From Caecitellus pseudoparvulus (taxonomy: Eukaryota > Protista > Bigyra: Bicosoecida): a stretch of 64,000 nt of DNA. Below are positions 11,501-58,273 of this stretch, in pieces. The notes under the pieces were generated by a model. That model saw nothing but the letters and a program-made list of their open reading frames with translations, made no database searches and was not told the origin of the DNA. Made by a program: the position numbers and the translations under genes. Each line of letters opens with the position of its first letter. The stretch's first letter is position 1. The stretch is taken from NCBI GenBank assembly GCA_965644315.1, contig CBFFRQ010000042.1, positions 496,001 to 560,000 of the forward strand, read 5' to 3'.

Positions 11501-11909
11501 AGGCATTCCCCTCACTGCGACAAGCGAAGCCCTTTACCATCACCTTGTTGCCTTTCACGACGCTGTGGCGCCCCTAGTGATCAGCCTGTTAGCTGAGCCA
11601 CCTGCCACCTCTGGCCTGCCCGTGCCAGCGTCCCCTTTGTGGGGTACCCTGCAAGGCCAGGTTGCACAGCAGCTGGTGCGGTATGCCTCGCCGGCGGTAC
11701 ACGCATCTGCACCCCAGGGTACCGCTGCCTACTTGCAAGTAACGCCTTGGGAGACATACAGCCGGGTGGTGGAGGCTGCATCGTCCGTGGCTCGCGGCGC
11801 TGCGGGGATGGAGGCATTCGCAGCTCTGCCGAGTCCTGGCGAGCAACCACCTGAAGAAGCACCATCTGGAGAGACGAAGGATGTCAGTCGTGTTTTGACG
11901 TTTCTGTAG
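8543..11909 (+). CDS. Importin-beta family karyopherin, importin-13/transportin-SR-like
   Basis: IBN_N-like start (VQRESNAFM...FLIANSLLTK|TRRDW, intron 8768..8852), DEDAFHQYRE and TWQDAEVAFFALRAV motifs, helical repeat composition. Confidence 0.75.
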
Positions 11910-11936
11910 CTCGCTGTGGAGTCGCTGCGATTGCAT

Positions 11937-12524
11937 TCATCCAGCTCTGCGAGGTCGGAGCTTGGACACAGACTTGATCACCTCCAACTCGTCCATGGCT
12001 GCACTGACACGGAAGACGGTCAAGAAGTAGCCCTTCTCGTTGCAGCACTTGAAGGTATACTGGTCTGCCTCCCCATGTTCCGCTGCTCCCTGGTGAATGC
12101 TCCAGTCTGGCCCGAAGCCTGCAGGGACGGTCAACGTCCGAACGGCCTCGAGAAGAGTGGGGTCGGTTGTCGATTCGCCCACTGCGCCCCTCGCTGCGCA
12201 CCTTGCCTCGGCGATGACCCTCTCCTCTTCATCGCTGCTGCTCGCTTGGTCTGCCCCTTGTTGCGTGGGCTGGCCCACACTCTGTGTCTCTGCAGGAGGG
12301 CGAGCATCAGTTGCTGAAGGTGACGTGATGGGCACCTCGAGGCCAGGCTAGTGCGAGGTGGCAGCTGCGCGCAATGCATCACGAACCAGAGGGTTGAGAA
12401 GCAGAGGACCCCATTCTCATACGCCCGGCCTATCGGGGCCAAGAGCCTTCTTGCGCACAGTCTGCGCTTGGCGTGGTGTGGGGCGACGGCTGCGCGACGA
12501 GCTAGATGCTCTTGAAGAAAGCAT
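11937..12524 (-). CDS. Small hypothetical protein (2 exons)
   Basis: ATG 12524 (MLSSRASS...GPDRPG) joins in frame to ORF 11937..12335 through intron 12348..12422 (GTATGA..TAG). The C-terminus looks globular (QYTFKCCNEKGYFLTVFRVS). Confidence 0.5.
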
Positions 12525-14311: not shown

Positions 14312-15481
14312 TCAGCTCCCTGTGCCAGCGGCCTCCCCGACGTTGTCGTACGTGTACGCGGTGTCCCCCGTCTGCAGGTAGTGGTACTGCTGGTCCTGCA
14401 GGTTCATCTTCTGCTCAGACACGAACGTAGTGCCTGCCAGCTCCAGCCGCAGTGTGACTGCATAGCTGTACTTCTCGTGGGCCACCATGTCCAGGACGCC
14501 CTTGATCTCCTGGGTCTTGTTCACGGCCAAGGGCTCACGCAGCATGAGGCGGCACTGGTACCAGTGAGTACCTGGCGCGGACGGCCCGGTGTCCAAACGC
14601 ACGTGGGCGTCGGTGCCCAGGAAGTCCACATCAAACCAGCACGCCAGGCCGTGGCACAGCGCTGTCTTGGTGGCATGGAAGGACAGGGGAATCGTCACTC
14701 GTGAGAGGGACTCAGGCTCATCCTGCTCAAAGTCCACCAGGTGGGACACGGTGGTGTCTGCGATGAGGATGCTGGGGTCAAAGTACCCCACGACAGGCTG
14801 GGCGAAGTGGTCATTCAGCGCCGCATCCTTCAAGGGTGTCAAGTCCAGTCCATAGAAGTCCTGCGTATCCCAGAACACCATCTTCTGCTCCTGCTCAGCA
14901 TACAGCGCTGCATCGGTGTACGGTGCGCAGTAGATGGTGCCACGCCCGGGGAACATCTTGCCGCCGGGACGCATGAAGCGCTGCCGAGCCACCATGAAGC
15001 TCTGAAGCATCTGCTCGTGCACGAGCAGGAACCCCATGGGCTCAGAGATGATGATGTCCACTGGCTCGGGGATGGTGATCTCCTCCACGGCGCCCTTGAT
15101 CACCTCGATGCGGTCCGAGCCGTACCCGTTGGCCTCTAGCAGTGCTCGAGCACGCTCAGCCATGCCTGATGCCTCCACCGCGTACACCTTGCGGGCACCT
15201 GCTTGAATGGCAAAGAATGCTAGAATGCCACTGCCAGTGCCTACGTCCATCACCACTGCCCCCGAGAAGTCTGAAGGGTTGTCCATGATAGCCTGCCTGT
15301 ACGTCCCCGTGCGCACAGTGTCCTGCAGCATGTTCTGCTGGTGCACCAGCAGACCATAGTACCTGAAGAAGGGGTGGTCCTTGTGCACCTTGCTGTCAGC
15401 GGTCTCGGGCGCGTCAATGATGGTGCCACCGCCTTCAGTTGGGGCTGCCGGCGGCGCGACGCCTGCGGGCTCTGCAGCCAT
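14312..15481 (-). CDS. CARM1: Protein arginine methyltransferase, CARM1/PRMT4 type
   Basis: FFRYYGLLVHQQNMLQDTVRTGTY, VMDVGTGSGIL, double-E loop IISEPMGFLLVHE, THWYQ. Confidence 0.9.
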   Translation of the reverse strand: MAAEPAGVAPPAAPTEGGGTIIDAPETADSKVHKDHPFFRYYGLLVHQQNMLQDTVRTGTYRQAIMDNPSDFSGAVVMDVGTGSGILAFFAIQAGARKVYAVEASGMAERARALLEANGYGSDRIEVIKGAVEEITIPEPVDIIISEPMGFLLVHEQMLQSFMVARQRFMRPGGKMFPGRGTIYCAPYTDAALYAEQEQKMVFWDTQDFYGLDLTPLKDAALNDHFAQPVVGYFDPSILIADTTVSHLVDFEQDEPESLSRVTIPLSFHATKTALCHGLACWFDVDFLGTDAHVRLDTGPSAPGTHWYQCRLMLREPLAVNKTQEIKGVLDMVAHEKYSYAVTLRLELAGTTFVSEQKMNLQDQQYHYLQTGDTAYTYDNVGEAAGTGS

Positions 15482-17000: not shown

Positions 17001-17190
17001 CTACTGTGGCCCTGGCTGCAATCCACCTTGCTGCCCGAGCAAACCGCCCTGCTGGCCCAGCAAACCGCCTCCTTGCTGGCCCATCATCAAGCCGCCGCCC
17101 TGCAGCCCTCCACCAAGCAGGCCACCGCCTTGCAGGCCACCACCTTGCAGGCCACCACCTTGTTGGCCCATCAAGCCGCCGGAGACTTGG
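17001..17190 (-). repeat. Degenerate coding microrepeat (GGGLQ / GQQGGL units) in the importin-alpha tail
   Basis: Translation [55 protein letters not shown]; 15-21 nt repeat units visible. Confidence 0.85.
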
Positions 17191-19110
17191 GGTCCAGAGC
17201 CCTGTGCCTGCAGTCCACCCATCTGTGGCTGTGCCACGCCCAGCCCACCCCCCAAACCGCCAAATGACAGTGGCGCGCTTGGACCACTTGGGAAGGTGTA
17301 CTCGCCGCCGTCTGTGGTGGGGGCATCCTCCTCATCCTCGGACACCGCATCGTAGTAGGTCAGCAGCAAGTCCTTGGCCTTCATCACAATGTTCGTGTCG
17401 CTGTGGTGCTGCAGCGCCTCGAACTCGTCAGCCCCCCCGGCGGCTTCAATGGCCTCCACGTACGGGTTCTCATCCTGGCCCTGCTCGGCGCAGTAGTCAG
17501 CGCCGACACGCAGGATGTTCTCCAGAGACTCCAGCGACACAGTCACCACCCGTGCATCAGGGACATTCAGAAGCTTGACGAGGCCAGGGATGGCTCCGCT
17601 GGCGGCGATGGCCATGATGTGTTGGCGCGTTCCGCCATGGGTGGCGTTACAGATGCACCAGACACACTCTTTGCGGATCTCAAAGTCGTCCGCCGACATG
17701 CGGTGGATGATGGTCCCCAGCACGCCATGCATGACGACTGCTCCCACTTGGTCGGGGCTGCCAGCGGTGATGTTGGACAGCGCCCACGCCGCCTCCTTGC
17801 GGATCGAACGGCGAGTGGACTGCAGGAGCGTCGCCAGCTTTGGGACGGCCCCAGCGCTAACCACAGCCTGTGTCTGGCCGTCGTCGCCGGTGACGATGTT
17901 GCCAATCGTGCGCAGAGCGGGAGTCTGCACGCTCAGCGCATCGTACGCCATGAGGTCGACGAGGCGGCGCGTTACGCCTGCAGCCACGACAGCGTTCACC
18001 TTCTCGTTGCTGCCATCAGACAGGTAGGACAAGGCCCAGCAAGCGTCCGTCAAGACGTCCTTGTCATCCACTGTGAGCATTTGCGCCAGCATTGGGATGC
18101 AGTGGCGCAGCATTTGGAAGCTGGCAGGGGGCTTGCCGCGGCACATGTTGGAGAGGGCCCAAGTCCCGTTGCGCAGCAGGGACACGCGCTTGTGGGGGGT
18201 CATTACACTCAGCAAGGGAGTGAGGATGCCGCCGTCGAGGACCAGGTTTCGGAACTCCGGGCCATCGCCTGCAATGTTGCCCAGGGCCCAGATGGACTGC
18301 TCCTGCACGTCTGAATGCTCAGACATGATCAAGCTGATGAGGGGAGGGATGGCGCCAGCCTCCACAACGCTGCGCGTCTGGGTGGTGTTTCCGGATGCGA
18401 TGTTCGTCAAGGCCCAGGCAGACTCGAACTGTGGGAGGGGGGGGGGAGTGGCAGGCCGCGAGTGTGTGCAGCGTTGTCCAGGAAGCAGCATGAGGTGGGG
18501 GACGCACCTGCAGCTTGGGAGACGATGTTTCGCGCAGGAAGCGCACAAGAATCTGCACGATGCCAGCATCAATAAAGTCTTGGATGGGTGGGTCTTGCTC
18601 TGCGCGGAGGCACAGATGGCGAGTGCTATGGCGGTTGGCGTGGCCAGTCTGCCGCAGCGCGGCTGTCACAAACCGATGGAGAGGAGCTTCCTTGACAGTG
18701 AGACGGCAGACAGACGCAGCTCCATGCTCTGAGATGACATCTGAGCCAGCAGGCTGCGGACAGTCTGTGGGTCTTGCGCCATCTGGATCAGCGCCATCTG
18801 CTGCTCATGCTTCTTGGCTTGGTCTAGGGTAGGAACTGCTGGGGTAGCACCAGGTACGGCAGGCGGTGCCACAGCCAGGGAGCTGCTTTGCGTGCGGCGC
18901 TTGGCACGGGATTCCTCTCGCTTCTTCTTGCGGAGCTTGATGGTTGTCTGCTCGCGCCGCGCACGGCTGCTATCGAGGCTCAAAGACTGTGGAAAGCAAC
19001 GTCTCCACAGTGGCGCATCGAAGCTGCCTGCCGCAACAACGGGCAGCACGCACCGGCATGAGGTCCTTTGACCTCCGAGAGCTGAGATCATCGGGCTTTT
19101 CAGACGCCAT
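17001..19110 (-). CDS. KPNA: Importin subunit alpha (4 exons) with G/Q/L-rich C-terminal extension
   Basis: IBB domain [24 protein letters not shown]; ARM repeats [42 protein letters not shown] and [13 protein letters not shown]. Confidence 0.95.
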
Positions 19111-23365: not shown

Positions 23366-26300
23366 ATGGCAGGGGCATTTCCTGAGGCTGCATTGTTTGA
23401 AGAAGCAGCAACATGGTGGTGCGTCCCGCACAGTCTCGCTGTACACCTCCCTGTCTCCCAGCACGCCAACACCTACCCCGCCGACTCCTTCCCCCCCCTG
23501 CGCAGGGACAAGACGTTTACCAGAAACCAAGGGACGGTAACATCCTCGCATTTCCTCACTAAGTTCAAGGTGGGTCCTGCTCCCCTTTAAGTTCTCCTGA
23601 GCGTCGTGCGGCGCATGCCTTCGTCCGCTGCCTGGTGCCGCAGCTGCAATACTGCGCTGTGGAGGGCGTGGAGGGCCAGCAGCACAGCGACGATGTCGTC
23701 AGATTCACAATGTTCAGGACCCCTGATGCGTCTGAGGTGAACCGAAGGGAGTTCACTGACTGGGCATGCAGGTTTGGTGGTCTACAAGGCGGCCAAGCAT
23801 ACGGCTGTGCCCTGGCTCTGTTCGAGCCAGTGCCTGACACCCGCGCGGTCGTCATCGCACCGTGGTACCACCACACCATGGGACGCAGCCAAGCCAACGA
23901 GGTGCGCATGAAGTGTGCCGCCCCTGCCCTGTCAGCCTGTGACGCCCTGTGCCCCATTTCGCAGAAGCTGACATCAGACGACAAGGCACCAACCGGAATG
24001 GGGCTGTCTGGCACCTTCCTCATTCGCGTCGGCCGCAACTCCACCCGCTTTGCCCTCTCACACATCGCTGCCACTGGGGCGCACGGGGGTGTTGCGACTG
24101 GCGTGCCGCGCCATAGCGAGCTGTTCTTCGTGCCTGGCCGAGGCTACAGTCTCGCCAGCAACCCAGACCCCAGCCTGATTCTGTTTCGATCAGTCAAGCG
24201 CGCCCTGGAAGTGAACAGCGTGCTGAATAAGTTCCCTCCGTCTGATGCACATGCTCAGAGCTGGGCTGAGATTCAGCGCACCCTGCAGGCCACCAGCCTG
24301 TCCCATACTTCGTCCACAATGAGCGACGAGCCAGGCGTGGACATGGGCGCCCCCTCAACCATGTACATGCCCTTTGACCCCACACCAGGTGGGCATGGAT
24401 TCGACTTGGAGGGGCCCAGGCACAGTGACTTCTCTGGCTCTGGCACTGGTGACGATGGGCCACCTGCCGGCGGCAAGAGCAGTGCTGCAGCAGCTGAAGC
24501 TGCTCCTCTTGTGAATCCGTACGTGGCCTTTTGTGGTGGGCTCTTCATTGCTCGTGGCGTTGAAATCGAAGTCGAGAAAAAAGATGCATCTGTGCTGCAG
24601 GCTGTGCAGGGCGGGGCAGTCAGCAGTGTTCAAGCGTGCTTGGGTGACCCCGGACACCATGACTGCAACATCCTTACTCCCCGGGAGCCCAGCCAGCAGC
24701 ACCCCCCCGCCGCTGCTAGCGAGCCATCGGCATATTCAGTTGAACATGTGCCCCAGTTCCCGGGGCTTGGCCAAGCGCGTGGCAACTCTCAGCAGGCCAA
24801 GTCTGATCCTCAGTTCCAGCCAGCTCAATCCGAGGAGTGTGAATGGGAGCCGGGTGCGGTACACCCTCATACACATGGAGCCCAAGCTGGAGGCGGTGGA
24901 TATGGTGATATGCCTGGCATGGCTGGCGGCAGCAGCGACGGCGGCGGCATGCACAGTGGCGGTGTCTACAGCTCACTGCACAGCAGTGGCGGCGTTGGGA
25001 GTGGCCCCAGTGGCCAGGGCGGCAACCCGTACGGTTCGCTGGACAGCAGTGGCGGCGTTGGGAGTGGCCCCAGTGGCCAGGGCGGCAACCCGTACGGCTC
25101 ACTGCACAGCAGTGGCGGCGTTGGGAGTGGCCCCAGTGGCCAGGGCGGCAACCCGTACGGCTCACTGGACAGCAGTGGCGGCGTTGGCAGTGGCCCCAGT
25201 GGCCAGGGCGGCAACCCGTACGGCTCGCTGCACAGCAGTGGCGGCGTTGGCAGTGGCCCCAGTGGCCAGGGCGGCAACCCGTACGGCTCACTGGACAGCA
25301 GTGGCGGCGTTGGCAGTGGCCCCAGTGGCCAGGGCGGCAACCCGTACGGCTCACTGGACAGTAGTGGCGGCGTTGGCAGTGGCCCCAGTGGCCAGGGCGG
25401 CAACCCCTACGGCTCGCTGCACAGCAGTGGCGGCGTTGGCAGTGGCCCCAGTGGCCAGGGCGGCAACCCGTACGGCTCGCTGCACAGCAGTGGCGGCGTT
25501 GGCAGTGGCCCCAGTGGCCAGGGCGGCAACCCCTACCAAAGCCCTGTCGAGGGACACAGTTTGGCAGGAATGGCCTCAGGTTTGCAGCGACAGTGTGCCG
25601 CAGCTGCCAGTGGGACTGCCGAGGGTGACTCCCTCGGAGTTCCTCCACCTCCAGCCGGTTTGCCAGATGGCCCCAGTTTTGTTCTGGCAGATAGCACCAC
25701 GTGTGCAGATGCAGGGTCTGCCGAGCCATCACACTCGTCAGGGCAGCTCTGGGAGCAGCTGTTGTGCAGCAGGGATACTGCTTTCTCAGACGTTTGGGCG
25801 AGACTTGAGCTTGCGCGAGACTTTGCAGGACGGCATTTGACGCTCCTGTGCAGTGCTGCGCTGCAGATGACGGGCTGTGCCAGTGTATCCCCCGATGGCT
25901 GGCAGCTTGCCTGGCACCGATCGTACCGCGACATCTCGAGCGCACTGGACGCCATCCCCAAAACAGCAGAGAATGCGAACGCTATTTGTGTGCATTCAAT
26001 CGCCGCTGGGATTCTCGCTTGCAAGGAGCATGAAGAAGACTCGGGCGCGCAGGCAGGCAGCCCTGCCGGACGCAAGCTCTTCAACGCAGCCCTCATGTTG
26101 AACAAAGCCCTGCGCTTTGAACAGATTCTCAGCACAAGCAAGCAGCATGTGAAAGGCGTGTCCCTCCTCCTCATGTGCAGCGCACTGAACAGGTTTGTGC
26201 AAGCAGCGATGAATGGGGCCACGCAGTTCTACGAACGCCCCAGCGACGAACAGTGCCGCCAAACCGCACAAGCCAACGCCGAGCTCGCTTTCAAAGTCTC

Positions 26301-26454
26301 AGCTAAGCTGTCTCAAGTGTGGAAAGAAGTTGACACTGCCGGGCCCTGGGAGTCAGCGGGCTTGGCAAGTGAGGTGGCGGCAGCAATGGAACCTGTTGAC
26401 GTGCTGGTGCAAAACGCCCACGTTTCCTTGGACTATGTGAGCCCCAAGAAGTGA
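23366..26454 (+). CDS. SH2-domain protein with N-terminal EF-hand-like (Cbl/STAT-linker-like) region, central Tyr-motif tandem repeats and helical C-terminal domain
   Basis: Removing introns 23419..23505, 23570..23643 and 23902..23964 gives PWYHHTMGRSQANE-KL...GTFLIRVGRNSTRFALSH, an SH2 signature with both Arg residues. Upstream: AATWWDKTF...F...VNRREFTDWACRFG. Confidence 0.75.
24967..25536 (+). repeat. Nine tandem 63-bp coding repeats, Y[G/S]SL[H/D]SSGGVGSGPSGQGGNP
   Basis: Unit TACGGCTC(A/G)CTG(C/G)ACAGCAGTGGCGGCGTTGG(G/C)AGTGGCCCCAGTGGCCAGGGCGGCAACCC(G/C) repeats from 24967 to 25533 and is followed by a tenth TAC. Confidence 0.97.
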
Positions 26455-26480: not shown

Positions 26481-27818
26481 TCACTGCCCACGGCGGCGCT
26501 TTGCCCCCCCCACAGTCCCGCCCGCTTGTTCACATCCGCTTTCTGGCTCCTCGCCCGTCGGTGTCGATTCTGGGTCTGACTCGATTCGATACCTTGGCAC
26601 AGACAGCTCCATAGTGCCATCAACACTCCACTTTATGTCGTACGTTCCATCTGCGTTCGCCCTCGCGATGACCCCGCCCCAAAAGTCACCCGTGCCCAGC
26701 CAGTCTGCAATCACCGCTTGCCCGACGACGAGCGGTGGCCCCTGCCCGGAAAGGGGCTGCCCCACCATGCCGTGAACATCAGCAAGCAAGAGGCGCTGCT
26801 CGACTGCCGAGGGAGGCTGACCAGTCGGCCAGTACGGAACAGCGATAGGCTTGTGCTGGGCTGAGGACTTGGCAGTCCCCACTGCCGTGGACGGCACCCA
26901 CTGCAGCTCCCCCGGAAACAGTGCAAAGTGCACCCTGCGATGCTGCGGGTCAGCGAACATTTTCCGCTGCAGGGCATCCGCTACGAGGAGGATGCCGAGC
27001 CATGGCCCGGTGGCCAGCGTGTCTTGCACGCGGAACTCGTGCGACACCTTCCGCCTCCCACGCTTGCCGTTGGGCCAGCCACTGAGGTCAAACCACCAGC
27101 CCTTGTAACGGGAGGATGTGCAATGCCGCACGCACATGTACGTGTGGTGGTGGCATGGCGAGGTGTCGGTCAGCTTGGGCGGGAGCCACTCGTGCGGCAG
27201 GTCTGAGGGGCGCAGGGGGGAGCGCGTGAACCACTGCCCCAGCTGGTCGTGGAACGTGAGGTTGGAAGAGACCCAAGCGCACACTGGCTCCTGAGTCCAA
27301 ATGGCCTGGATGTCCTTGGCTGACGACGGCGCCGCGGGGCGGTAGTTCATGGTGGTTGCCGGCAGGTCCATGCCCACCTCGCCTGCGATGAACAGCGCCT
27401 CGCCGTCCACTTCGTTCCAGGTGAAGCCGCTGGCCGCCAGCAATGCCTCTGAAGCTGCGCACACGCCACGGGGCAGTGGAACACCCCGGTGCGTGCTGTC
27501 TGCGACACTGCCTCCCTGCAGCACAGCTGCTGCGAAAGCCTGAGATGAGCCCGCGGCAGCCGGGAAGGGAGCAGCGGAGAACCCGCCCGCTGCAGAGGCA
27601 GGCTCGCACAGCGCAGAAAAGTTATGAATGCTGAGGTTGGAGTGGATGGGTTCCAGGCCCACGTCAACCCCTGCGTTGAACTGCATGCCGCCAAGCTGCA
27701 CCGGCTCGCACAGCGCAGCCAGGGCAGCCTCCAGCTCCTGTGCGTGGCGAGCTTGAAGGTTCTTCAGCTCCGCAAGCTGGCGTCGCTGCAGTTCCTTGAT
27801 ATGTTCAATACCAGCCAT
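26481..27818 (-). CDS. Hypothetical protein with C-terminal Tudor-like domain and possible PWWP-like segment
   Basis: VGQAVIADWLGTGDFWGGVIARANADGTYDIKW..DG is Tudor-like; GPWLGIL...HFALFPGELQWVP is PWWP-like; N-terminal coiled coil; terminal AKRRR NLS. Start uncertain because of an upstream acceptor near 27955. Confidence 0.55.
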   Translation of the reverse strand: MAGIEHIKELQRRQLAELKNLQARHAQELEAALAALCEPVQLGGMQFNAGVDVGLEPIHSNLSIHNFSALCEPASAAGGFSAAPFPAAAGSSQAFAAAVLQGGSVADSTHRGVPLPRGVCAASEALLAASGFTWNEVDGEALFIAGEVGMDLPATTMNYRPAAPSSAKDIQAIWTQEPVCAWVSSNLTFHDQLGQWFTRSPLRPSDLPHEWLPPKLTDTSPCHHHTYMCVRHCTSSRYKGWWFDLSGWPNGKRGRRKVSHEFRVQDTLATGPWLGILLVADALQRKMFADPQHRRVHFALFPGELQWVPSTAVGTAKSSAQHKPIAVPYWPTGQPPSAVEQRLLLADVHGMVGQPLSGQGPPLVVGQAVIADWLGTGDFWGGVIARANADGTYDIKWSVDGTMELSVPRYRIESDPESTPTGEEPESGCEQAGGTVGGAKRRRGQ

Positions 27819-28111
27819 TCCTGAAGATGATCCCCCGGGCAGCGGACCGACAGAGAGAGCGCTGCTGCCAGCTGCAGCGCCTGGTGAAACGCAGGTGAAA
27901 CGGCAACGTGAGCCAGGGGGTGGGTATCTGCGGGGAGCCCTGCAACGTGTGACCTGCAGAGGGCAAAGTATTTCAAATCTTATACTGTTCAATGCCAGGC
28001 TGGTACAATGGTACCTGTCACTCTCACATGTTGCACTTCAGCCTGCTTCTTGCGGGAGCATCGCTCGCAAGTCACGGCTGCACTGCAGGTTGAAAGCGCA
28101 CGCGCTTGGAG

Positions 28112-29685: not shown

Positions 29686-32653
29686 TTACTCCTTTCCCTC
29701 AACTGCGCTGGCCTCCTTGCCCTCTGCCTTGCCCTCTGCCTCCTCCGCCGCCCGCGCCGCGGCCAAGTCCTCTTCCCACGTCCCGAAGTCGCAAGGGGCG
29801 GCCATGCGGGGGTCACTGGGTTGCATGGAGAACTGCTGTGCCCACCTGGCACTGGCGGCCCCCGTGGTCACCTGCTGCGACACGCCCATGTCACGGCGGA
29901 TGGCCTCCGCGTCAGCTTGGTACTTGGCCAACTCAGACTCCGACAGGGACGCACGAGCTGACAGGTTAAAGGCCACTTCGAAGCAGTCTGGGGTGATGGC
30001 CCACATGGCTGCCTCCTCCCCGCGCAGCTTGGCTGCGACCCTGCGCCGGACAGAGATCTGCACCGCCTCCTGCACCAAGAACTGGATGTCGGCGCCTGAC
30101 ATGCGCTTGTCGCTGCACGCCTGGGCCAGGGCCTCCTGGTCCAAGGCGGGGTCCACGGGCATCTTGCGCAGCTTGGAAGCCAGGATGGAGCGCACCGCAG
30201 GGGGGTCCGGCAGGGGGATGTAGATGAACTGGTCCAGGCGGCCAGGGCGCAGGACTGCCTTGTCCACGCTGCCGATGTTGTTGGTGGCGCCGATGACGAA
30301 GACGTTCTTGCGCTCGCCGACGCCGTCCATCTCGGCCAGCAACTGGTTCACGATGCGGTCTGAGATGCCTGGCCCCCCAGTGGTGCTGCCGCGGGCCACG
30401 GCGATGGAGTCGATTTCGTCGAAGAACAGCACACACGGTGCAGAGCCGCGGGCCTTGTTGAAAATCTCCCGCACATTGCCCTCTGACTCGCCAAACCACT
30501 TGGACAGGAGCTGCGGCCCCTTGATGGAGATGAAGTTGGCGCTGCACTCGTTGGCGATGGCCTTGGCCAGCATAGTCTTCCCGCAGCCTGGAGGCCCGTA
30601 CAGCAGCGCGCCCTTGGGCGGCACGGTGCCCATGTCCTCGAACAAGGCAGCGTACTTGACGGGGAACTCGATCATTTCCTTAAGCTCCTGCTTGACGTCC
30701 TCCAGACCACCGATGTCCTCAAACTTGACGTCCGGCACCTGCACCACCACGTCTCGCATGGCGCTGGGTGTGATGCGCTTCATGCCACTGGTGAAGTCGG
30801 ACATGAGCACCTCCAGGCTGGCGTACACGCTGGCGTCCACCATGTCAGCTTCCGTGTCCAGGAGACCCCCTGCCTGACGCCGAGCGCAGGAGAAGCCAGC
30901 GTTGGTGCACAGGGACTTGATGTCGGCACCCACGTACCCATGCGTCTCCTGCGCCAACAGGTCCAAGTTCACTGCGTCGTCGTTGTCCGGGTGGCCAGGG
31001 CCCTTCTCGGGGTCGTACAGCTTCACCTTCATGCCGCCATTCACCACCATGATGTCCAGGATCTCGCGCCGGGCGGCACGGGAAGGCACTGGGATGAGGA
31101 TCTCAGTGTCAAAGCGCCCAGCCCGGCGCAGGGCAGGGTCCAGGGAGTTGGGGCGGTTGGTGGCAGCGATGACCATGACGTGCTCGTCCCCCTTCAGGCC
31201 GTCCATCTCCGTGAGCAGCGTCGCCACTGCACGCTGCAGGACTGGGTCCTGGGTTTCTTCCCGGTTCACGCCAATGGCGTCAATCTCGTCGATGAACAGG
31301 ATGCCAGGGGAGTTCTCCCGCACACGCTTGAAGGCTTGCCGGATGTTCTCCTCCACCTGCGGCCCTGCAGCCATGAAGTCTGCGCCAGTGGTCTGGAAGA
31401 AGAAGGCGCCTACCTCATTGGACACCGCCCGCGCGATGAGGGTCTTGCCCGTGCCAGGCGGGCCATGCATGAGGACTCCCTTGGGGGCCTTCACACCAAT
31501 GGTGGAGAAGAGCTTGGGGTGCCGGATGGGCAGCTCCACTTGCTCCCGGATAGTCACCAGCTGCTCACTCAGGCCGCCCACCTCCGCGTAGCCGGTTTCG
31601 GTGATTTCCTTCTCCACGTCGCTTTTGGGGATGGGGGCGTCCTCCACCTGCACCTCGCACCGAGTGCCAACCGGCTCAGTGGCTGCTGCGGCAACCAGGC
31701 CCCAGTCGTCCCCCACTGCCAGAGCTGCGGCCCCCTCCCCAGATGCGGCTTGGCCACCTCGGTTGCCCGCCTCGGGTCCATGTCCAGGCACGAACTGAAT
31801 CTCCGTCACGCGGAACCAGAGGACGCGGTGGGCACCGGGGATGCGCAGGAGGTCGTTCACTCGCACTGCCCGGGCTGTGGGGTACCCCTCGAAGTAGGGC
31901 TTGGTGAAGAGGGTGTGCAGGTCCCCCGTGAGCCCCTCCAGGGCGATGTCCTCCAGGGCTGCAAGGCGCACAGACGCCAGCTTGGGGCGGATGTCCACCT
32001 TCGTCACCGTCATGCGATCCTGCATCTTCTCCATGATCAGCTCCTCCTTGGTCTTGCGCCCGCCCAAGGCGATAGACATCTTCGAGTCCTTCAGCGTCAC
32101 GGGGAACTTCAGGCGCAGGTTTCGGCGAATGGTCTCATTCACACCGACGCTGCCTGGCTGCAGTGCTGGCTGTGACACCACATTCGCATAAAACCTCCGG
32201 CGCAACTTGCCGCGCAGCTGGGAAGGAGGGGGAGCAGGAGCGTGCACTTGCTGAGTGGGAGCCAGGCAGGACGTGGCCGGGCGCCCTTGCAATGCGCACC
32301 TGGACCAGGTCACCCTCAAACAACTGCAAACAGAGTGCGAGGTGGGGAGTGCTGTCGAGCTCGTGTGCACGCGCATGGCACAAGCGCCTGAAAACAGTTT
32401 GGCGTGGTGGACAGTGCGGAAACGCAAAGCGCAGGCACGTACGTTCAGCGCTGCGAGGTCGTCAGGGTGCATCTCCAGCATGTTGTTGTCGATGGCAATG
32501 TCGACAGGGCGCTGGACGATGAATCTGGGGGGGAGCTTCACCCTGTGCGAGAGTGGCGGGCAGGAAGTCGTGAAGCAGGGTGTGGCAACCACTGAGCTGA
32601 AGCTGTGTGCCTCACCCCGCCAGCTCATCTACTGGTGTTGCGGCCGCTGCCAT
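29686..32653 (-). CDS. CDC48/p97-like type II AAA+ ATPase, divergent (4 exons)
   Basis: D1: GYAEVGG, GPPGTGKT, LFIDEID, ATNRPNSLDPALRRAGRFD. D2: DIGGLEDVK, GPPGCGKT, KGPQLLSKWFGESE, FFDEID, LRPGRLDQ. N-domain remnants (LFEGDLVQ|LRGKLRR, NETIRRNLR). Confidence 0.88.
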
Positions 32654-33015: not shown

Positions 33016-36000
33016 ATGGCAGGCTTGGACTTTGCTGCTGTGGATGCGGCCATGCAGGCGTTGGCCACCTCTGCCCCTGGCTCCCAGGAGGCTGGCTCCG
33101 TTGTCACTCAGGTGCTTGGTTCGTTGGTGCAGACCATCAAGGCTGCGAACCACTTCCCCACGGATGAGACGGGGGACCATGCCCTGTTCTCGAGCCACGC
33201 TGTTTTCCCGGAGGAGTCCAAGACCCAGGCGAACCAGCTCGTGGAGGTGCTGTCCGCCTTGGTGGATCAGGTACGGCGAACGCACACGAAACGCCACACA
33301 GCCCGTGGCAAGCGTTGGACCTTCTTCCCTGCTGTGCAGGTGACTCCTGGCGCCGGTAAGCGCGTAGTCACTGCTTTATTGGAAGATCCATCAGATCCCA
33401 GTGCGTTTGACGACCTGCGAGACGTTCTCGATATGCTGCTGGAAGGCATTGACGTGTGGCTGGACGAGGTGAGCTGGGCAGGCCACTGTGCCCCGCTTCA
33501 AGTGCGCTCCATGGCTTCATGCTTCCCCACACTACACAGGCCAAGGGTTCCACTGCAGAGCGCCAGGTGCATGCGCTGCTACAGCGGTCTAGTGGCGCCC
33601 CTGCCCAGCTGCCTCGCTCCGCCAGCAGCCGCCCACAGGACTCCTTCCCTGCCGGCTGGAAGCCTGACAACAGCCGGAGACCCTTCGTCCCCCGACTGCA
33701 GGCCAAGCACAACGCCATCGCCGCAGTGCCGACACTGAAACCGGTGGACGGCAGCCACGGCCCGCCCCCGCTGCACCTGCACCTATCCGCACCGCACCCA
33801 TACGGGCCTGAGCTAGCGGCATGGGAGGCTCCAGAGTGGCTGTTCACCCCGGCTGTCGAAGCGCCCTTTGTGTCCCCCTTCACCACCCCCTTCGCCTTCG
33901 TGGACACGCAGGAGGCGCTGCAGGAGCTGATGCAGCACCTGGAGTCCCCTGGCGTTCGGGAGGTAGCCATCGACCTGGAGCACCACTCCATGCACAGCTA
34001 CCAGGGCCTGACATGCCTCGTGCAGATCAGCACACGCAAGAAGAACTTTGTGGTGGATGCACTGGCCCTATGGCCCCACCTGCACGTGCTGAACCGCGTA
34101 ACTACCGACCCCCAAGTGCTGAAGGTGCTGCATGGCTGTCGCCAGGACGTCCTTTGGCTGCAACGGGACTTCGGTGTGTACCTCGTGGGCGTTCTGGACA
34201 CTGGTGCCGCAGCCAAGGAGCTGGATGCGCCTGCACGTAGCCTCGCGTACCTCCTGCGCACGTATGCTGGCGTGGAGGCTGCCAAGCAGCACCAGATGGC
34301 AGACTGGCGCGTGCGAGACCTGCCTGACGAACTCATCGCCTATGCCCGTGATGACACACACTACCTGCTCGGCATTGCTGACCGCCTGCGCAATGAGCTG
34401 CTGCAAGCTGCGCCGGTGTGCAACCCGGACGGCAGCCCTGGACACCAGCACGGCCGCCTCCTGCGGGTGCTGTCAGCATCCTCCGCCCTTGCCGCTCAAG
34501 CGTATGAGAAGGACCGCATGGACGAGGCCGCCAGTACCCGCCTGGCTCGCAAGGTGCTGGGGGGTGGGGCTTCAGCCTGTACTATGCGGGTGTTCCATGC
34601 CTTGGCTGAGTGGCGGGACCGCACGGCGCGAGGGCTGGACGTGTCCCCTCACGTCGTGCTGCCCCGCCGCACCCTGGCCAAGCTGGCTCGCAGCCCTCCC
34701 GACTCAGTTGCAGCACTGCTGCGTGCATGCAGGCCGGTGCCGGCAGCCATCCAGCAAGCCTCAGAAACTGTGCAGTGCATCATCGCAGACAGCGTCGCGG
34801 GCAGGTACAGCATCCCCTGGCATGACGCAGTGCTGCCTCCAGCCGGGCATGGGGATGCGCCTCGTGTGTTTGACGGTACGTGGAGTGCGTGGAGCAAGGG
34901 CATCCCCCTCATTCCTCGAGAGGGCGCCAGCGATGCTGAGGCAGCGGTGTTGAAGAGTGGTGGCACTCCTATCGAGGCGCCACCAGGCGCTGCCTTGCAG
35001 TCCACAGCTGTGCAAGCAGCCGGGGAGGGGCACCATCCTGTGCGCGTACCGGAGGGTGGTGATGATGAGCAGCTTGCCCGGCCAGCCAGTGCCACTTCCG
35101 GGGGGGCACCGCTGGATCAAGACAAGGGGGCGCTGCCACCCTTCCATCTACACCCTTCCCTCGGGGAGGTGGGTGTGGCGCCGGAGCCTTGCACTGGCTT
35201 CCTAGCAGGGCACTTCGTGGGCATTTCGCAGGATGTGCTGGTGACGGCGGAGCTGCCTCAGGGCGAGGCCCACGACGTGTCTGGCGCGGGGCCTGTGGGG
35301 CAAGTGCACGCCGTGCTGCCTCAGGCCTGGGTCCGCAAGGTGCAAGCTGGCGTGGGACCCCATCTCCCTGGGGCAAGCCCTGCCCTGCCCCGTGTGCTCA
35401 CGCACTCCCTGGCGACACCTGATGGCCCGACTACAGCCTCCACCACGGCTGCTGAGATCGCTGCCGGGCTGGAGGGCAAGTACTTGCACCAGCTCCTCCC
35501 AGCAGCTGCGCCACCGCGCCAGGCTGAAGCAAGCGGTGTGGTTGCCACGCCGGGAGCCGGCGCACAGGTTCAAGCCCAGGCACAGGAAAGCAAGCATGAG
35601 GAAGGAGGAGGCGTTCAGTCTCTGCCAAAGTCCCTCGCAGAGGTGTACGACTTGTCCATGTCCAGCCGCAAGCGCCACAAGTCCAAACACCGCCGCTCCG
35701 CTGCTGCCCAGCCCGCGCCGGGGGACACTCCAGCTGCGGCAGGCATGCCAGCAGCTGAGCGCCAAGCCCTCGTTGATTCCGTTCACGCCCAAAGCTCCAA
35801 GGACATGACGAGTGACGCGCACTTTCTGGCGGCACTTGGCTGGGGCGATGCCCAGGCAGCGGAAGCGGCTGTTCCCCGCTCTGAGGCACCTCACATTGCC
35901 AAGGCCAGCCGGGCCGCAACCCGAAAGCTGCTGGGGACATCCAAGGCGGCAGGAGCTGGAGGTAGTGGCACGGCCATGAATGCCCGTGGGATTGGGCAGG

Positions 36001-36206
36001 TTGGGCAGCAGACTCTGGCAAGCATCAAGCCCGGCGCGACTTCCATCGCAGACATTTCTAGGGCGCAGGGCAAGCGCCGCAAGGGACGCAAGGCTGGAGG
36101 GTCCAGGACAGTCAAGGCCGCGAGCAGCAGCACCGCTTCCAGTAAAGGCCATGCTGGTGGCAAATCGCGCTCCAAGACAGCCATGGGAGCCTTGCTGCGG
36201 GACTGA
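33016..36206 (+). CDS. RRP6: Exosome component 10 / RRP6 3'-5' exonuclease (3 exons)
   Basis: PMC2NT-like N-terminus; PHPYGPE, AIDLEHHSMHSYQGLTCLVQIST, KVLHG..QDVLWLQRDFG, QMADWRVR and YARDDTHYLL; HRDC WRDRTAR..DVSPHVVLP. Introns 33271..33339 and 33469..33539. Confidence 0.93.
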
Positions 36207-49021: not shown

Positions 49022-49948
49022 CTACTCTGCCTCTCCCCCTGCTGCGTGCAGCAGCATGGAGCGTGCCGCCTCGTAAACTGCAAGGGCCGGGCCGACGCTG
49101 ACGGCCACCTTGGCGAGGGCTGGCAGCAGCCCGCGGTACAGGCCACGCACACCTTCGTGCGCGACAGTGTCCTTGAGGCAGTGGGTCAGGCCAGAGTAGG
49201 TCCCCTGCCCTGGCTGCAGGCCCAGGTGCTGGCGCTGGGCGGGAGGGAGGGACGACACCTGCAGCCGCTTGCGGGCAGTGTCCAGGGGGTACGTCACCAC
49301 CTTGGCTGCGAGGCCGGAAAGAGTGCCAGCCACACTGCCCACAGTGGCAGCTTGCGTGGTATCGGGCAGCACCCCCTGCCGCCCTGCAAGCCACCCCCTC
49401 ACGGGTTCGTAGCACGCGAAGAGCACCGCATTGGAGGGCAGGACAGAGGCCAAGGCGGGGGACATGCCGTGGAACAGGCCTGCCACGCCGTGCTGCTGCA
49501 CTTGGGAGGTAAGAATGCGCAGCAGGCGGGGGCTGGCGCCTGCATCGGCCACCGTGCGTGTGCGCAGGAAGTCCAGGGGGTACGTCACAGCGGTGGCTGT
49601 GAGCCCAGCTGCCGCGCCAGCAGCACTGAGCAGGACACTGTGAGCTGCACCCACAGGCGCCTCTGGGAGAGCTTGCTGTAGAGCACGGTAGATGGGGAAC
49701 TGAACCGATGAGTACGTGCTCCAGAGCAAGAGGCCGGGCAAGTTGCCACGCCAGAGGCCCAGAAGGCCACCCTGCTGCACGGCTGCTCTCAGCTGCTGCG
49801 CCAGGCCATGCGAAGGCGAGTGCGACAGCTGTGCTCGGATCTTTACGACGTCGAAGGGCGCCACTAGGGTTCTGGACACAGCTCCAGACAGCAATCCTGC
49901 GACAGCTTCTGTGCGCGCTGATGGGCGTGGGCGGGAGCCGCCTTCCAT
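49022..49948 (-). CDS. Mitochondrial carrier (SLC25), thiamine pyrophosphate carrier-like
   Basis: Three carrier signatures: APFDVVKIR, YPLDFLRTR and YPLDTARKRLQ. LWRGNLPGLLLWSTYSSVQF resembles TPC1/SLC25A19. Confidence 0.85.
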   Translation of the reverse strand: MEGGSRPRPSARTEAVAGLLSGAVSRTLVAPFDVVKIRAQLSHSPSHGLAQQLRAAVQQGGLLGLWRGNLPGLLLWSTYSSVQFPIYRALQQALPEAPVGAAHSVLLSAAGAAAGLTATAVTYPLDFLRTRTVADAGASPRLLRILTSQVQQHGVAGLFHGMSPALASVLPSNAVLFACYEPVRGWLAGRQGVLPDTTQAATVGSVAGTLSGLAAKVVTYPLDTARKRLQVSSLPPAQRQHLGLQPGQGTYSGLTHCLKDTVAHEGVRGLYRGLLPALAKVAVSVGPALAVYEAARSMLLHAAGGEAE

Positions 49949-50207
49949 GGCACGGGGCGTGAAACGAAGGCGAAACGTCAGCGCTGCTTCTTCGACACAG
50001 CCGGCGAGTGTGTGGCGCGCGGCGAAACACAGCAGAACTGGGGCAAGATAACCAATGCAAGGAGGCAGCAGGCCAAGCCTGCGCTGACCCACACCTGATC
50101 TTCCATGGCCGGACACGCCACGAGCTGGAGCAGCGAGCCCCTGATGCAGGTGCCAGAGGCCGGTGCACTCGGTGTTCATTAGGATTTGCCTGGCAGTGGA
50201 AGTGGCA

Positions 50208-53200
50208 TCAGCCTGTGATGCTGCTTGTGCCCCCTCCAGTGCTGGCAGGCCCAGGGGGCGGTCGAGGAGGGGGGGCTGGCCCCGCCGCCTCCACCAAGTT
50301 CCCTTCCACACTCGCCTGCAGGTGTGCCGGCTCCGCGCTGTGCCGCCGGCGCTGCTTGGACCGCTGCGCCGCCCTGCCCGCAGGCTCGGAGCGGGGCGAA
50401 GCGGCCGCAACCTCCGCACTGAGCGCGCCCCCTGACACATTCAGGGTGGGGTACCGCGGTGGCGCCGTCAAGCCGCCCGGTGACGCGGAGCTCGTCATGC
50501 CGTGCAGAGCTGAGCGCGTCGCACGCAGCGCTGACTTCAGGTCTGCCACACGCGCCTCCCGCGCACGCAGCCGGGTTTGGTGCCTGTCCAGGGACTGCTC
50601 GAAGGACCTCGCTTCGGACACTGCCGTTTCGGCTCGGGCTCGCTCCTTGGCAAGGGCGGCGTCGGCAGACTGAGCCGTCGTGAGGAGTTCCTGCCGCAGG
50701 GCACGGACTTTGCCGGCAAGAGACTTCACTTTCGCCTCTGCAGCCAAGGCACGGGGGCGCCACTTGCCCTCCACCGCTGCCTCCGCGGCAGCCACCGCCT
50801 CCTTCGTGTGTGCAGCAGCAGCGGCGGCGGCAGCATCCGCCGCTGCTTCGGTGCGCTGCAGCTCACGCTGTGCGTCTGCGAGTCGCTCCTGCAGCACTGC
50901 AGTGCGGGTGGTGTCTTCAGGAGGGGGTGCAGCTGCAGCAGCAGCTTGTGCAGCGGCCAGTTGAGTCTGCAAGTGAGTGACCTGCGCTTGGAGGGTCTGC
51001 GAGGCTGGGAGTGCGTCGCTGGCCTGGGTCAGTGCCTGCATGCCCCTTGCAAAGACGTCTGGCTCAGGGCTCAGCAGTTCCTGTGCAGCTCCGTGCGGCA
51101 AGTCGGCGATGCTGCAGGCGCTGTCCACGACACGGGTGAAGCGCCTGAACATCGTGCTGAGGCGAGTGCCCGCTTCCTCCACCTGCTCTTGCAGCTCAGC
51201 CAGCTGGCTGTCTGCAGACTGCTTGCGTTGCTGGGCGAGGCCAAGGTCACTCTGCGCCGTTGCAAGCTGGGCTGCCGCGGTGCTGGCTGCCGCCTTCGCC
51301 CCCGCCAGCTCCTCCCGCACCGACAGCAGGTCGCGCTGGGAAGCGTCTAGTTTCTGCTGCAAGGCTTCCAGGCGCTGCTGCGCGATGTCAGCTGCTTCGC
51401 TAGCTGCTTGCGAGGCTTCCTCCTGGACGCTGCGCAGCTGGGCAGCGTGCTTGGCAACTGCTGCCTCCTCCGCACCTCGCGCAGCTGCCTGCACGGCAAG
51501 GGTGGACTCCCGCGCTTGCTTGGTGTGCAGGGTGTGCATGCTGCTGCACAGCGCATGCAGCGCCACGGCCAGGTCGTGTGACACGCCGGACACTTGCCCC
51601 TGCACCTCACCGCGCAGGGCGGAGCAAGCCCCCTGCACCTGCCCCACACCCTGCACCAGCTTTCGCAGGGCCCCACGCTGACGGCTCACACTAGCTGTCT
51701 GCGTGCGCTGGGCCCTCTCTTCTTGCGCTTGCAAGGCAGCCTTGGCCTCTTGCAGTGCTGTGGCAGCCTGCGCCTCCCCCTCTTGTGCCTCTTGCAAGCG
51801 GGTGGTGAGGGAGGCGCACTGCGCCTCGGCAGTGCTGGTCGCCGCACACGCTGCTGCTGCCTCTCGCCGGGCACCATGTGCGTCCTCCCGAGCCTCCGCT
51901 TCCAGCTGCCTGCTCCGCGCCAGGGCAGCTTCTGCCTCCTCTGCGCGGCCTGTGGCTTGCTGCACTGCCGCTCGCAGCTCCGGCACCGCCTTGGCCAGCT
52001 GCGCCTCGGCAGCCTCGGCCCGGGCAGTGGCGGCCGCCGCCTCCTCCTCGGCGGCCCGCACGGCCTGCTCCAAGGCCACCATGCGTGCTGCTGTGCCGCC
52101 TGCCGCCCCCACCTCCCGCAGGCGCCCCTCATAGTCGGTCTGCTGCTCCGCCAGCTGCTTGCTCAGCTGCGCCCGGCGTGCCTCCGCATCAGCCACCTCC
52201 TGCTCCAGCCGGCCCTGCGTGCGCTGCAGCGCCTCCACCTGCGCCGTCGCGCCCGCCAGACTGGAGGCCAGCTGAGACGCCTTGCTCTGGGCAGCTTCGG
52301 CGGCAGCCTCTGCCGTCTCAGCACGACTTCGCAGCGCGGCCAGGTCCCGCGACGCCGCGTCAGCACGCTCCTCGGCACTGGCCGCCTTGGCCCGCAGGGA
52401 GGCGATGGTGTGCTCGCTCGCCTCCGCGCTGCTGCGCATGCGGGTGAGCTCTGCGTCGTGCTGGGACGACAGCGCCCGCCGCGTGGCGGCCTCAGCCTCC
52501 CGCACGGCCGCAGCCTGGGCACTGGCGGCAGCCTGGGCGAGGGCCGCCTCCCGCTCCGCCAGCGCCGCCTGGTGCTGCTTGCGCGGTAGCCACGTCTCCC
52601 GCATGTCTGCCAGCTGCTGCGTGGCGGCGTCGGCGCGCTCCTCGGCAGCCTGGGCCGCCTGTGTCAACTGCCCCAGGCGGCCCGTCATGAGCCCCTGGTA
52701 CTCCTCACGCAGGGCGGCGGACAGCTCCTTGGCCTGGTCATGGGCCTGGGATGTCAGTGCGGACAGGCGCTCCTCAGCTGCCGCTGTGTCAGCCTTGCTG
52801 CGCTGCAGGTCGGACTGCAGACGGGCGTGACTCTCCTGCAGTGCCTCCAGCTGCGCCGAGGCACGCACACCAGCCTCTTGCGCCGCCTGCAGTCCCTCCA
52901 GCCGCTGCTGCACTGCGCTCTCCCGCTCCTGGGACCCCTCCAGCGCACTGCGCAGTCTGTGCGCCTCGTGCTCCGCTGCCTGCTGCCGAGACACCGCCTC
53001 TGCAGCGCTTGCCGCAGCAGAGTCGCGCTCAGCTTGCAGCTTCCGCAGCGCTGCAGCGTGAGCTTCCGACTGCTCCTTCAGCAGAGACTCAACGCGGTCT
53101 CCCAAGGAAAGGTACTTGCCTTGCAGTGCAGTCTGCGACGCCTCCGCTTCCGACAGGCGCTGCTGCAGTGCACTTGCGCGCTCCGCCTGCCCCCTCAGCT

Positions 53201-57943: not shown

Positions 57944-58273
57944 CGTGCCTCGGCATGGGACCCGCGAGCGCACGCCGCGGAGACTGCCGGAAGAGGTGCG
58001 ATTCCTCACAAGAACATGAAAAAGTGGTGCATTCGGCCAGCAGCTGGCCGTCCCCCCCCTGCTGCTGGCCAACCACGGCGGTTTGGTAATTGACCCGTGG
58101 CTCCGAACGCAGCCAGGCAGGGCACAACTGGCGCGTGCCGCAAGGCAGGACGGCGCCGAAGCCGTCCACGCTGGAGCTCTATGTGGCATGTGAAGTTTCT
58201 GTGCGTGGCAGCCCCCCCCGCTTGGCTGTAGCGTGGTGAAGCAGCTAGCTCACGCTGCCAGTGGGTCTCCAGC

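Follow-up and report, generated by a model that had tools for sequence, protein, structure and literature searches.

SH2 adaptors that carry tyrosine docking motifs of their own include Shc, the SHB, SHD, SHE and SHF proteins, TSAd (SH2D2A) and SLP-76/BLNK. Arrays of tyrosine motifs are also known from docking proteins, such as p130Cas with 15 copies of YxxP, the IRS and Gab proteins with YxxM motifs, and Dok. Phosphotyrosine signalling has been worked out best in animals and closely related lineages, and elsewhere its readers, writers and substrates are poorly mapped. Here we describe a gene of the bicosoecid protist Caecitellus pseudoparvulus that encodes an SH2 domain and, in the same chain, a near-perfect tandem array of tyrosine motifs. 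It lies on the + strand at positions 23366-26454 of the window, by which we mean the whole stretch of 64,000 nucleotides that was analysed (contig CBFFRQ010000042.1 of assembly GCA_965644315.1, positions 496,001 to 560,000 of the forward strand). From the N terminus, the predicted protein consists of a short conserved module, a canonical SH2 domain, a Gly/Ser-rich and probably disordered region of approximately 450 residues with conserved tyrosine motifs, and a conserved helical C-terminal domain. We tentatively favour the reading, which we hold to be somewhat short of probable, that this is a lineage-restricted, phosphotyrosine-regulated cytosolic adaptor or docking protein whose array may be phosphorylated and read by SH2 domains, with multivalent assembly as the result.

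The SH2 domain occupies the following positions.

23860..24243, + strand: SH2 domain, split by putative intron 3, with the alphaA2 Arg, the FLIR betaB5 Arg, RHSELF (candidate betaD4 His) and LFRSVKRAL (alphaB).

The assignment was reached through an ortholog. An exhaustive phmmer search of 1.84 billion representatives returned a single true relative, P0002 (E 8.4e-19). Its gene is on a metagenome contig of 52 kb (L011) and, as in the window, has a CDC48-like AAA gene nearby on the opposite strand (synteny). The SH2 module is contiguous in L011, without the 63-nt insert that splits the Caecitellus copy. It scores 34.3 bits (E 2.6e-8) against the Pfam SH2 profile PF00017, whose curated gathering cut-off is 21 bits. 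The ortholog module also matches approximately 150 to 190 solved SH2 sequences, including those of ZAP-70, Syk, SHP-1, Yes, BTK, Fyn, RasGAP, PLCgamma1 and Shc, with a best E of 1.2e-5, and its matches in the PDB are SH2 chains only. In a language-model feature search of the protein atlas, all 10 of the 10 best family-annotated matches to the ortholog module belonged to the SH2 family or clan (top score 0.89). The two proteins are only 36% identical overall. Exon 3 of the Caecitellus gene is 57% identical to ortholog residues 1-51 (BLASTP, E 7e-22), and exon 4, collinear with it, is 55% identical to residues 56-141 (E 1e-32). Because the ortholog passes the Pfam cut-off and the Caecitellus exons are 55-57% identical to its module, we accept that the protein carries an SH2 domain, a conclusion drawn by sequence comparison.

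What the betaB Arg and the pY+3 pocket do in SH2 domains has been described previously (PMC3507883). Here the betaB5 phosphotyrosine Arg is present in FLIR at 24015-24026, and the FLLR of the ortholog aligns to the FLLR of the ZAP-70 C-terminal SH2 domain. The alphaA2 Arg is present as well, in G-R-(S/A)-Q-A (G-R-A-Q-A-E in the ortholog), and pairs with the Arg of T-R-E-E-A in ZAP-70. Both phosphotyrosine arginines and the R-H-S-[EQ]-L-F strand are invariant between the two species. We take the His of this strand to be a candidate for betaD4, as placed by its spacing relative to Src-type SH2 domains. The first-pass annotation of this DNA had proposed an SH2 domain with both arginines, and this proved right by way of the ortholog (34.3 bits), not from the Caecitellus copy alone. 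The low-confidence AlphaFold model of the N-terminal part (predicted local distance difference test score, pLDDT, 45) has a helix at 81-92, strands at 123-128, 135-141, 156-163 and 167-170, and a helix at 179-190, the order expected for the alpha-beta-beta-beta-alpha sandwich of an SH2 domain. A reading of the exon 3 module as Cbl TKB-like, or as an EF-hand plus SH2, was considered and rejected: the module has no Pfam match, AlphaFold gives two low-confidence helices, and in the PDB sequence search exon 3 matched only the start of the PLCgamma1 C-terminal SH2 domain (best E 0.1-0.3).

Downstream of the SH2 domain, two single motifs and the array stand out.

24364..24381, + strand: tyrosine motif YMPFDP; the ortholog has YDEFDP after a run of Asp/Glu.
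24514..24540, + strand: tyrosine motif NPYVAFCGG; the ortholog has QPYEEYCPG in aligned columns.
24961..25545, + strand: tandem array of a GVYSSL unit, eight NPYGSL[H/D]SSGGVGSGPSGQGG units and NPYQSP, with 10 tyrosines at an exact spacing of 21 residues.

The tyrosine contexts of exon 4 are YMPF, YVAF, YSVE, YGDM, YSSL, eight times YGSL, YQSP, YRDI, YERP and a terminal YVSP, and the contexts listed in the first-pass annotation turned out to be correct on direct reading. Tandem Repeats Finder reported 9.0 copies with a period of 63 at 24967-25536, with 96% matches and no indels. All differences between units are synonymous except for one His/Asp site at Tyr+4, and none breaks the frame. The array is unique in the 30.6-Mb genome. 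Throughout the disordered region, L, I, V, M, F or P stands at +3 in 13 of the 14 tyrosines, compared to a background of 23%, with nine of them coming from one recently amplified unit and so not independent. Three motifs are common to both species, namely YxxFDP, PYxx[FY]C and a repeated [PA]YGS[LM]. The ortholog units are 25 or approximately 35 residues long, and what they have in common with the Caecitellus units is confined to the YGS[LM] core and a GGV..GP stretch. A YGS[LM] core that is present in both species, with different unit lengths and numbers, indicates that a YGS-hydrophobic array is ancestral and was kept while turning over by duplication and loss.

That the array is translated in frame with the SH2 domain, as first proposed, is borne out by a single open frame and by strain differences. 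A metagenome scaffold (L010) that is 99% identical to the window over 3.4 kb stems from this strain or one very close to it. There are 27 differences between the two: 12 in the 0.7 kb upstream of the start codon, 3 in introns and 12 in exons 3-4. The density of single-nucleotide polymorphisms (SNPs) is thus 12 in approximately 0.7 kb of upstream intergenic DNA versus 0.5% in the exons. Ten of the 12 exonic SNPs fall at codon position 3 (P approximately 5e-4 at a chance of 1/3 per site); 9 are synonymous and 3 non-synonymous. The frame, including the linker and the repeat, is therefore translated and constrained, and at the level of sequence comparison the SNP pattern demonstrates purifying selection on the frame and a real gene. 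An N gap in this scaffold (L010:2343-2444) spans most of the repeat array, which short-read assemblies do not resolve.

Inspection of every base yields a gene of four exons with a coding sequence of 2865 nt, or 954 codons; the coordinates and letters given in the first-pass annotation agree with this inspection. It consists of the following parts.

23366..23418, + strand: exon 1, 53 nt, with ATG at 23366 and donor GTGCGT from 23419; its translation aligns to ortholog exon 1.
23419..23505, + strand: intron 1, 87 nt, GT..AG; required for the frame, position common to ortholog contig L011, one strain SNP.
23506..23569, + strand: exon 2, 64 nt, 40% identical to ortholog exon 2, with the common pattern D..F..T.T.S.F..KF.
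23570..23643, + strand: intron 2, 74 nt, GT..AG; needed for the frame, same position in the ortholog, one strain SNP.
23644..23901, + strand: exon 3, a conserved pre-SH2 module of unassigned fold and the start of the SH2 domain (PWYHH..GR..QA, alphaA2 Arg).
23902..23964, + strand: putative intron 3, 63 nt, in frame, stop-free, GTGCGC..CGCAG; one strain SNP (uninformative).
23965..26454, + strand: exon 4, 2490 nt including the stop codon, with the remaining SH2 domain, the disordered tyrosine-motif region and the C-terminal helical domain in a single open frame.

All three introns are GT..AG, with 5' ends GTG[CG]G and 3' ends [CT]GCAG. The frame requires introns 1 and 2, and both stand at the same codon positions in the ortholog. 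Intron 3 is a different case. The long + strand frame 23635-26454 (939 amino acids) is a single open reading frame (ORF) that includes the in-frame, stop-free 23902-23964. The DNA around the gene is GC-rich (60-64% GC locally). The splice motifs were rejected as proof of this intron. Comparable donor/acceptor pairs occur here at a rate of 0.86 per kb on each strand, and no stop interrupts 72% of 21-codon windows, so that GT..AG pairs and stop-free 63-nt stretches are common by chance and the motifs are weak evidence. The ortholog lacks anything that corresponds to the 21 codons, and its matches to exons 3 and 4 meet at residues 51 and 56, as splicing would predict. Intron 3 is thus backed by collinearity with the ortholog alone, and a lineage-specific loop insertion would look alike. 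An ortholog intron (L011:1954-2006, between ..TRLD and FVNW..), 39 codons upstream of putative intron 3, is missing in the Caecitellus gene. As each species has an intron position that the other lacks, intron turnover in this gene is real. The SH2 domain is intact whether intron 3 is spliced or retained, with an alphaA-betaB loop that is 6 residues longer than that of the ortholog if it is spliced and 27 residues longer if it is retained. The ortholog can be aligned over the entire length of exon 4.

Two further ORFs cross the repeat, one in an alternative frame (24533-25840, + strand, 435 amino acids) and one antisense (24716-25945, - strand, 409 amino acids); both are by-products of the GC-rich repeat and not genes. 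A convergent neighbour on the - strand (26481-27992, no Pfam match) ends 27 nt from the stop codon of the gene (26454), and with such a gap between convergent stops the 3' untranslated regions must either overlap or be extremely short.

The end of the chain forms a separate domain.

25738..26451, + strand: all-helical C-terminal domain, 31% identical to the ortholog C terminus, with common TGCA and R.LFNAA motifs.

AlphaFold predicts approximately 10 helices for it (pLDDT 43). The domain has no Pfam match, no usable match in the protein atlas and no paralog in the genome.

Under the reading that we favour, tyrosine-kinase-like enzymes would phosphorylate the array at its ten Y-x-S-hydrophobic sites, as well as YxxFDP and PYxx[FY]C. 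SH2 domains would then find up to ten equivalent pY-G-S-L sites to dock on in the phosphorylated array. Possible readers are the protein's own SH2 domain, in trans or in cis as an autoinhibitory contact, and the other SH2 proteins of the genome. In this way multivalent assembly might be triggered by phosphorylation, and localisation or an effector contact may come from the C-terminal helical domain. All that goes beyond the conserved SH2 domain and motifs, namely phosphorylation, binding, self-association, autoinhibition and condensation, we infer.

Candidate writers and further readers are encoded elsewhere in the genome. A genome search gave 149 exon-level matches to PF07714. Among the best 12 of the 149, two have loops of another kind than the other ten, which are of HRDLK/HRDIK type or variants.

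G000:C18:1190908-1191579: kinase L014, with HRDIAARN and PIKWMAPE.
G000:C13:214105-214962: kinase L018, with HRDLAARN.

HRD[IL]AARN loops are tyrosine-kinase catalytic-loop signatures, and kinases with loops of this type are candidate writers for the array. In the window itself there is no kinase among the PF07714 matches or among the long ORFs scanned, in agreement with the first-pass annotation. That annotation had also suggested a search of the genome for tyrosine kinases, tyrosine phosphatases and further SH2 proteins; kinases with HRD[IL]AARN loops are indeed present, and so are at least five other SH2 loci, including a STAT-like one (L001), a second (L002) and one of Spt6 type (L005). 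L002 (490-2100, + strand; G000:C68, approximately 11750-11980) contains an ORF of 536 amino acids in which a canonical SH2 domain (32.8 bits) is preceded by a degenerate, SH2-like segment that lacks the Arg (GTFAVTF) and followed by a tail that ends in LLYTNLPG, a layout of tandem-SH2 or STAT-like type.

Another of these loci bears on the motif itself. L006 (202-1725, - strand; G000:C18, approximately 1336373-1336495) encodes an SH2-like domain that scores 17.6 bits against PF00017, below the cut-off, and has Ser at the alphaA2 position and the Arg of YLLR. Its Pro/Ser/Ala-rich tail contains EYTSF, DYSSF and EYISC, three copies of [DE]Y.S[FC] approximately 38 residues apart, as well as VYAPV and AYADF. 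The +3 residue is hydrophobic in 5 of the 7 tyrosines of this tail versus a background of 13%. The occurrence of Y-x-S-hydrophobic motifs in two unrelated SH2 proteins is suggestive, though not proof, of a common kinase or reader preference. It would be a further step to propose that this protist has its own phosphotyrosine system with a common Y-x-S-hydrophobic code, and that the protein polymerises or condenses when phosphorylated and serves as a hub for other SH2 proteins. We regard this extended proposal as doubtful.

Several results weigh against the view that the array is phosphorylated and read by SH2 domains, or against parts of it. With regard to the SH2 domain, the homology searches of the Caecitellus copy were made with the unspliced ORF or with single exons, and at E<=1 neither the ORF nor either exon gave a Pfam match. 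The six-frame PF00017 search of the genome listed six other loci and not this one. In the PDB sequence search the exon-4 half gave nothing relevant, and its hhalign comparison with the other SH2 domains of the genome was not significant (E 0.027, probability 1.8%). The AlphaFold model of the N-terminal part is of low confidence, and fold searches with it were not significant (Foldseek best E 0.14, VIA Z <=5); SH2 chains were frequent among the top rows of both but scattered among unrelated ones. With regard to the motifs, the first-pass annotation had pointed to a predominance of Y-x-x-hydrophobic or Y-x-x-Pro contexts. This holds for the Caecitellus disordered region and for the three conserved motifs; the general bias is absent from the ortholog outside these motifs, as only 6 of its 15 tyrosines have a hydrophobic residue or Pro at +3 at a background of 28%. 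The ortholog array has three AYGSM units in one assembly (L011:3540-3830) and at least five in the other (L012:3800-4274, which ends at the contig edge), a difference that could be either a copy-number polymorphism or an assembly collapse. Near-identical units with a copy number that varies between ortholog assemblies also fit a neutral coding minisatellite, and YGS is also a sticker of the FUS type, [G/S]Y[G/S]. Finally, for classical protein tyrosine phosphatases (PF00102) the whole genome gave eight weak matches, of 30 bits or less, that cover only the catalytic-loop part of the profile. Such enzymes may be absent from this genome or split by introns.

Alternatively, the Gly/Ser/Tyr region may act independently of phosphorylation, as a flexible linker or as a sticker-and-spacer region of the FUS type that provides weak self-association or reach. 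The SH2 domain would then be a targeting module that binds phosphorylated partners elsewhere, via phosphotyrosine or via phosphoserine/phosphothreonine repeats as in Spt6, and not its own repeats. We consider this rather unlikely, but it fits the amino-acid make-up encoded by exon 4 (G 17%, S 14%, A 10%, P 8%), the presence of P-Y-G-S within Gly/Ser spacers in each unit and the variable copy number of the array. In the ortholog, the neighbouring region has Q/N/P/H-rich tyrosine contexts that lack a hydrophobic +3 (YPPN, YQAH, YPSH). It is also known that the SH2 region of Spt6 reads phosphorylated Ser/Tyr heptad repeats by low affinity combined with multivalency (PMC3507883). On the other hand, Leu or Met at +3 is kept in both species, and this is not needed by an aromatic sticker alone. 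The tyrosine fraction in the array is 1/21, with Gln and Asn occurring once each per unit. This density is low for a FUS-like domain, as that of the FUS low-complexity domain is approximately 1 per 8. Moreover, the acidic residues before YDEFDP in the ortholog are a typical tyrosine-kinase substrate context, and a similar Y.S-hydrophobic motif is present in the tail of another SH2 protein (L006).

It is less easy to maintain that the array is a neutral, fast-turnover coding minisatellite in a disordered linker, with function only in the SH2 domain and the C-terminal helical domain and the tyrosine motif as a passenger. The 96% nucleotide identity between units would be expected of such a minisatellite, unit lengths and copy numbers differ between the two species and between the two assemblies of the ortholog species, and the array is unresolved in the strain scaffold, where it falls in the N gap. 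Yet both species retain an array despite saturation-level divergence elsewhere, and the four residues of the YGS[LM] core were kept while the spacers changed. The array also contains no frame-breaking changes and, except for the His/Asp site, no replacements. We therefore judge this explanation to be improbable. That there is no SH2 domain or no functional gene, either through chance resemblance or because a decaying pseudogene is read through an insertion, is close to refuted and hardly credible: it could appeal to the missing Pfam match of the Caecitellus copy, the low-confidence structure prediction and the non-significant fold searches, but the ortholog scores above the Pfam cut-off and its PDB matches are all SH2 chains, the two species have introns 1 and 2 at the same positions, the SNP pattern is that of purifying selection and the 2.8-kb frame is intact.

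The searches for relatives indicate that the gene family is probably an orphan of two species, restricted to a small protist lineage. A metagenome scan added only a further contig of the ortholog species (L012). In word-based homolog searches, the whole ORF returned low-complexity candidates only and no match, the C-terminal domain found only its own gene fragment on the 99%-identical scaffold L010, and the ortholog N terminus found only itself. Another candidate of the exhaustive search (P0003) is an unrelated low-complexity repeat protein, and the one match of the own-genome paralog search (E 0.016) contains stop codons and is spurious. Matches to light-harvesting proteins (PF00504) or integrin beta (PF00362) were not found in the whole genome, and from these profiles the organism looks non-photosynthetic and without this adhesion marker.

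The Pfam neighbours in the window are as follows.

211-1329: CDP-diglyceride synthase-type cytidylyltransferase.
14315-15481: PRMT-type arginine methyltransferase.
17004-18572: importin-alpha (Arm repeats).
29689-32628: double-AAA CDC48-like ATPase.
33456-36203: 3'-5' exonuclease with HRDC (Rrp6/WRN-like).
49025-50440: mitochondrial carrier.
54434-58189: SET-domain protein.

The locus is a compact and testable pair of substrate and reader, with one SH2 domain, one peptide (NP-pY-GSL-H/D) and a natural His/Asp variant at +4. If the array is indeed phosphorylated and read by SH2 domains, it would be a natural phosphorylation-switched multivalent assembly that evolved independently of the LAT, nephrin and Cas systems of animals, and it would provide a first ligand motif for the SH2 domains of this lineage. 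If not, what remains is an SH2 protein of an ordinary, lineage-specific kind whose linker is repetitive.

With the SH2 family as a whole, the protein shares the W-Y-H..R..AE helix, the G.FL[IL]R strand with its Arg, the F-A-L-S and R-H-S..F strands and the L-F..V..AL helix. The nearest solved domains are the C-terminal SH2 domains of ZAP-70 and Syk and the SH2 domains of SHP-1 and the Src family. The Caecitellus copy is very divergent, however, with longer alphaA-betaB, CD and EF loops, and it belongs to no named SH2 subfamily. The logic by which an SH2 domain binds a phosphotyrosine on another copy of the same protein, which we predict here, is that of the STATs, and the genome also encodes a STAT-like SH2 domain (L001). 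In contrast to the STATs, we detected no DNA-binding or coiled-coil domains in this protein, and with many tail tyrosines instead of one it would be predicted to form polymers or networks and not dimers.

Two other comparisons concern the array. The tandem SH2 domains of Spt6 read the heptads of the C-terminal domain of RNA polymerase II, which are repeated and phosphorylated on Ser and Tyr, and multivalency offsets their low affinity (PMC3507883). Here too an SH2 domain faces a long array of identical short phosphorylatable Tyr/Ser motifs, but in the case of Spt6 the reader and the array are on separate proteins, and the Caecitellus genome encodes its Spt6-type SH2 at a different locus (L005). 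FUS-type low-complexity domains resemble the array in their Gly/Ser-rich spacers, regularly spaced tyrosines and Y-G-S triplet. The array differs from them in its lower tyrosine density, the conserved hydrophobic +3, the Pro before Tyr and the covalently attached SH2 domain.

The closest likeness in overall design is to the animal docking and adaptor proteins. Like p130Cas, IRS, Gab and Dok, the protein has a disordered substrate region with approximately ten similar tyrosine motifs, and its helical C-terminal domain comes after this region as in Cas, where a substrate domain precedes helical bundles; neither Pfam, the AlphaFold model nor the atlas search indicated any homology of the C-terminal domain. 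Its reader is an SH2 and not an SH3, PH or PTB domain, its motif is Y-G-S-L and not YxxP or YxxM, and its units are recent duplicates. With Shc, SHB, TSAd and SLP-76 it shares a phosphotyrosine reader and disordered Y-x-x-hydrophobic/Pro motifs in one polypeptide without a catalytic domain. The first-pass annotation did not recognise this architecture from any described family. For the protein family, with its single ortholog, this holds; the design principle of an SH2 domain with tyrosine docking motifs of its own is standard in animal adaptors such as Shc, the SHB family, TSAd and SLP-76, and in the STAT tail. Whereas the protein is related to these adaptors by the SH2 domain only, its near-perfect tandem array with a fixed spacing of 21 residues on an SH2 chain, the YGS[LM] motif, the unassigned N-terminal module and the extra helical C-terminal domain, likewise unassigned, and the non-animal host set it apart from them and are new.

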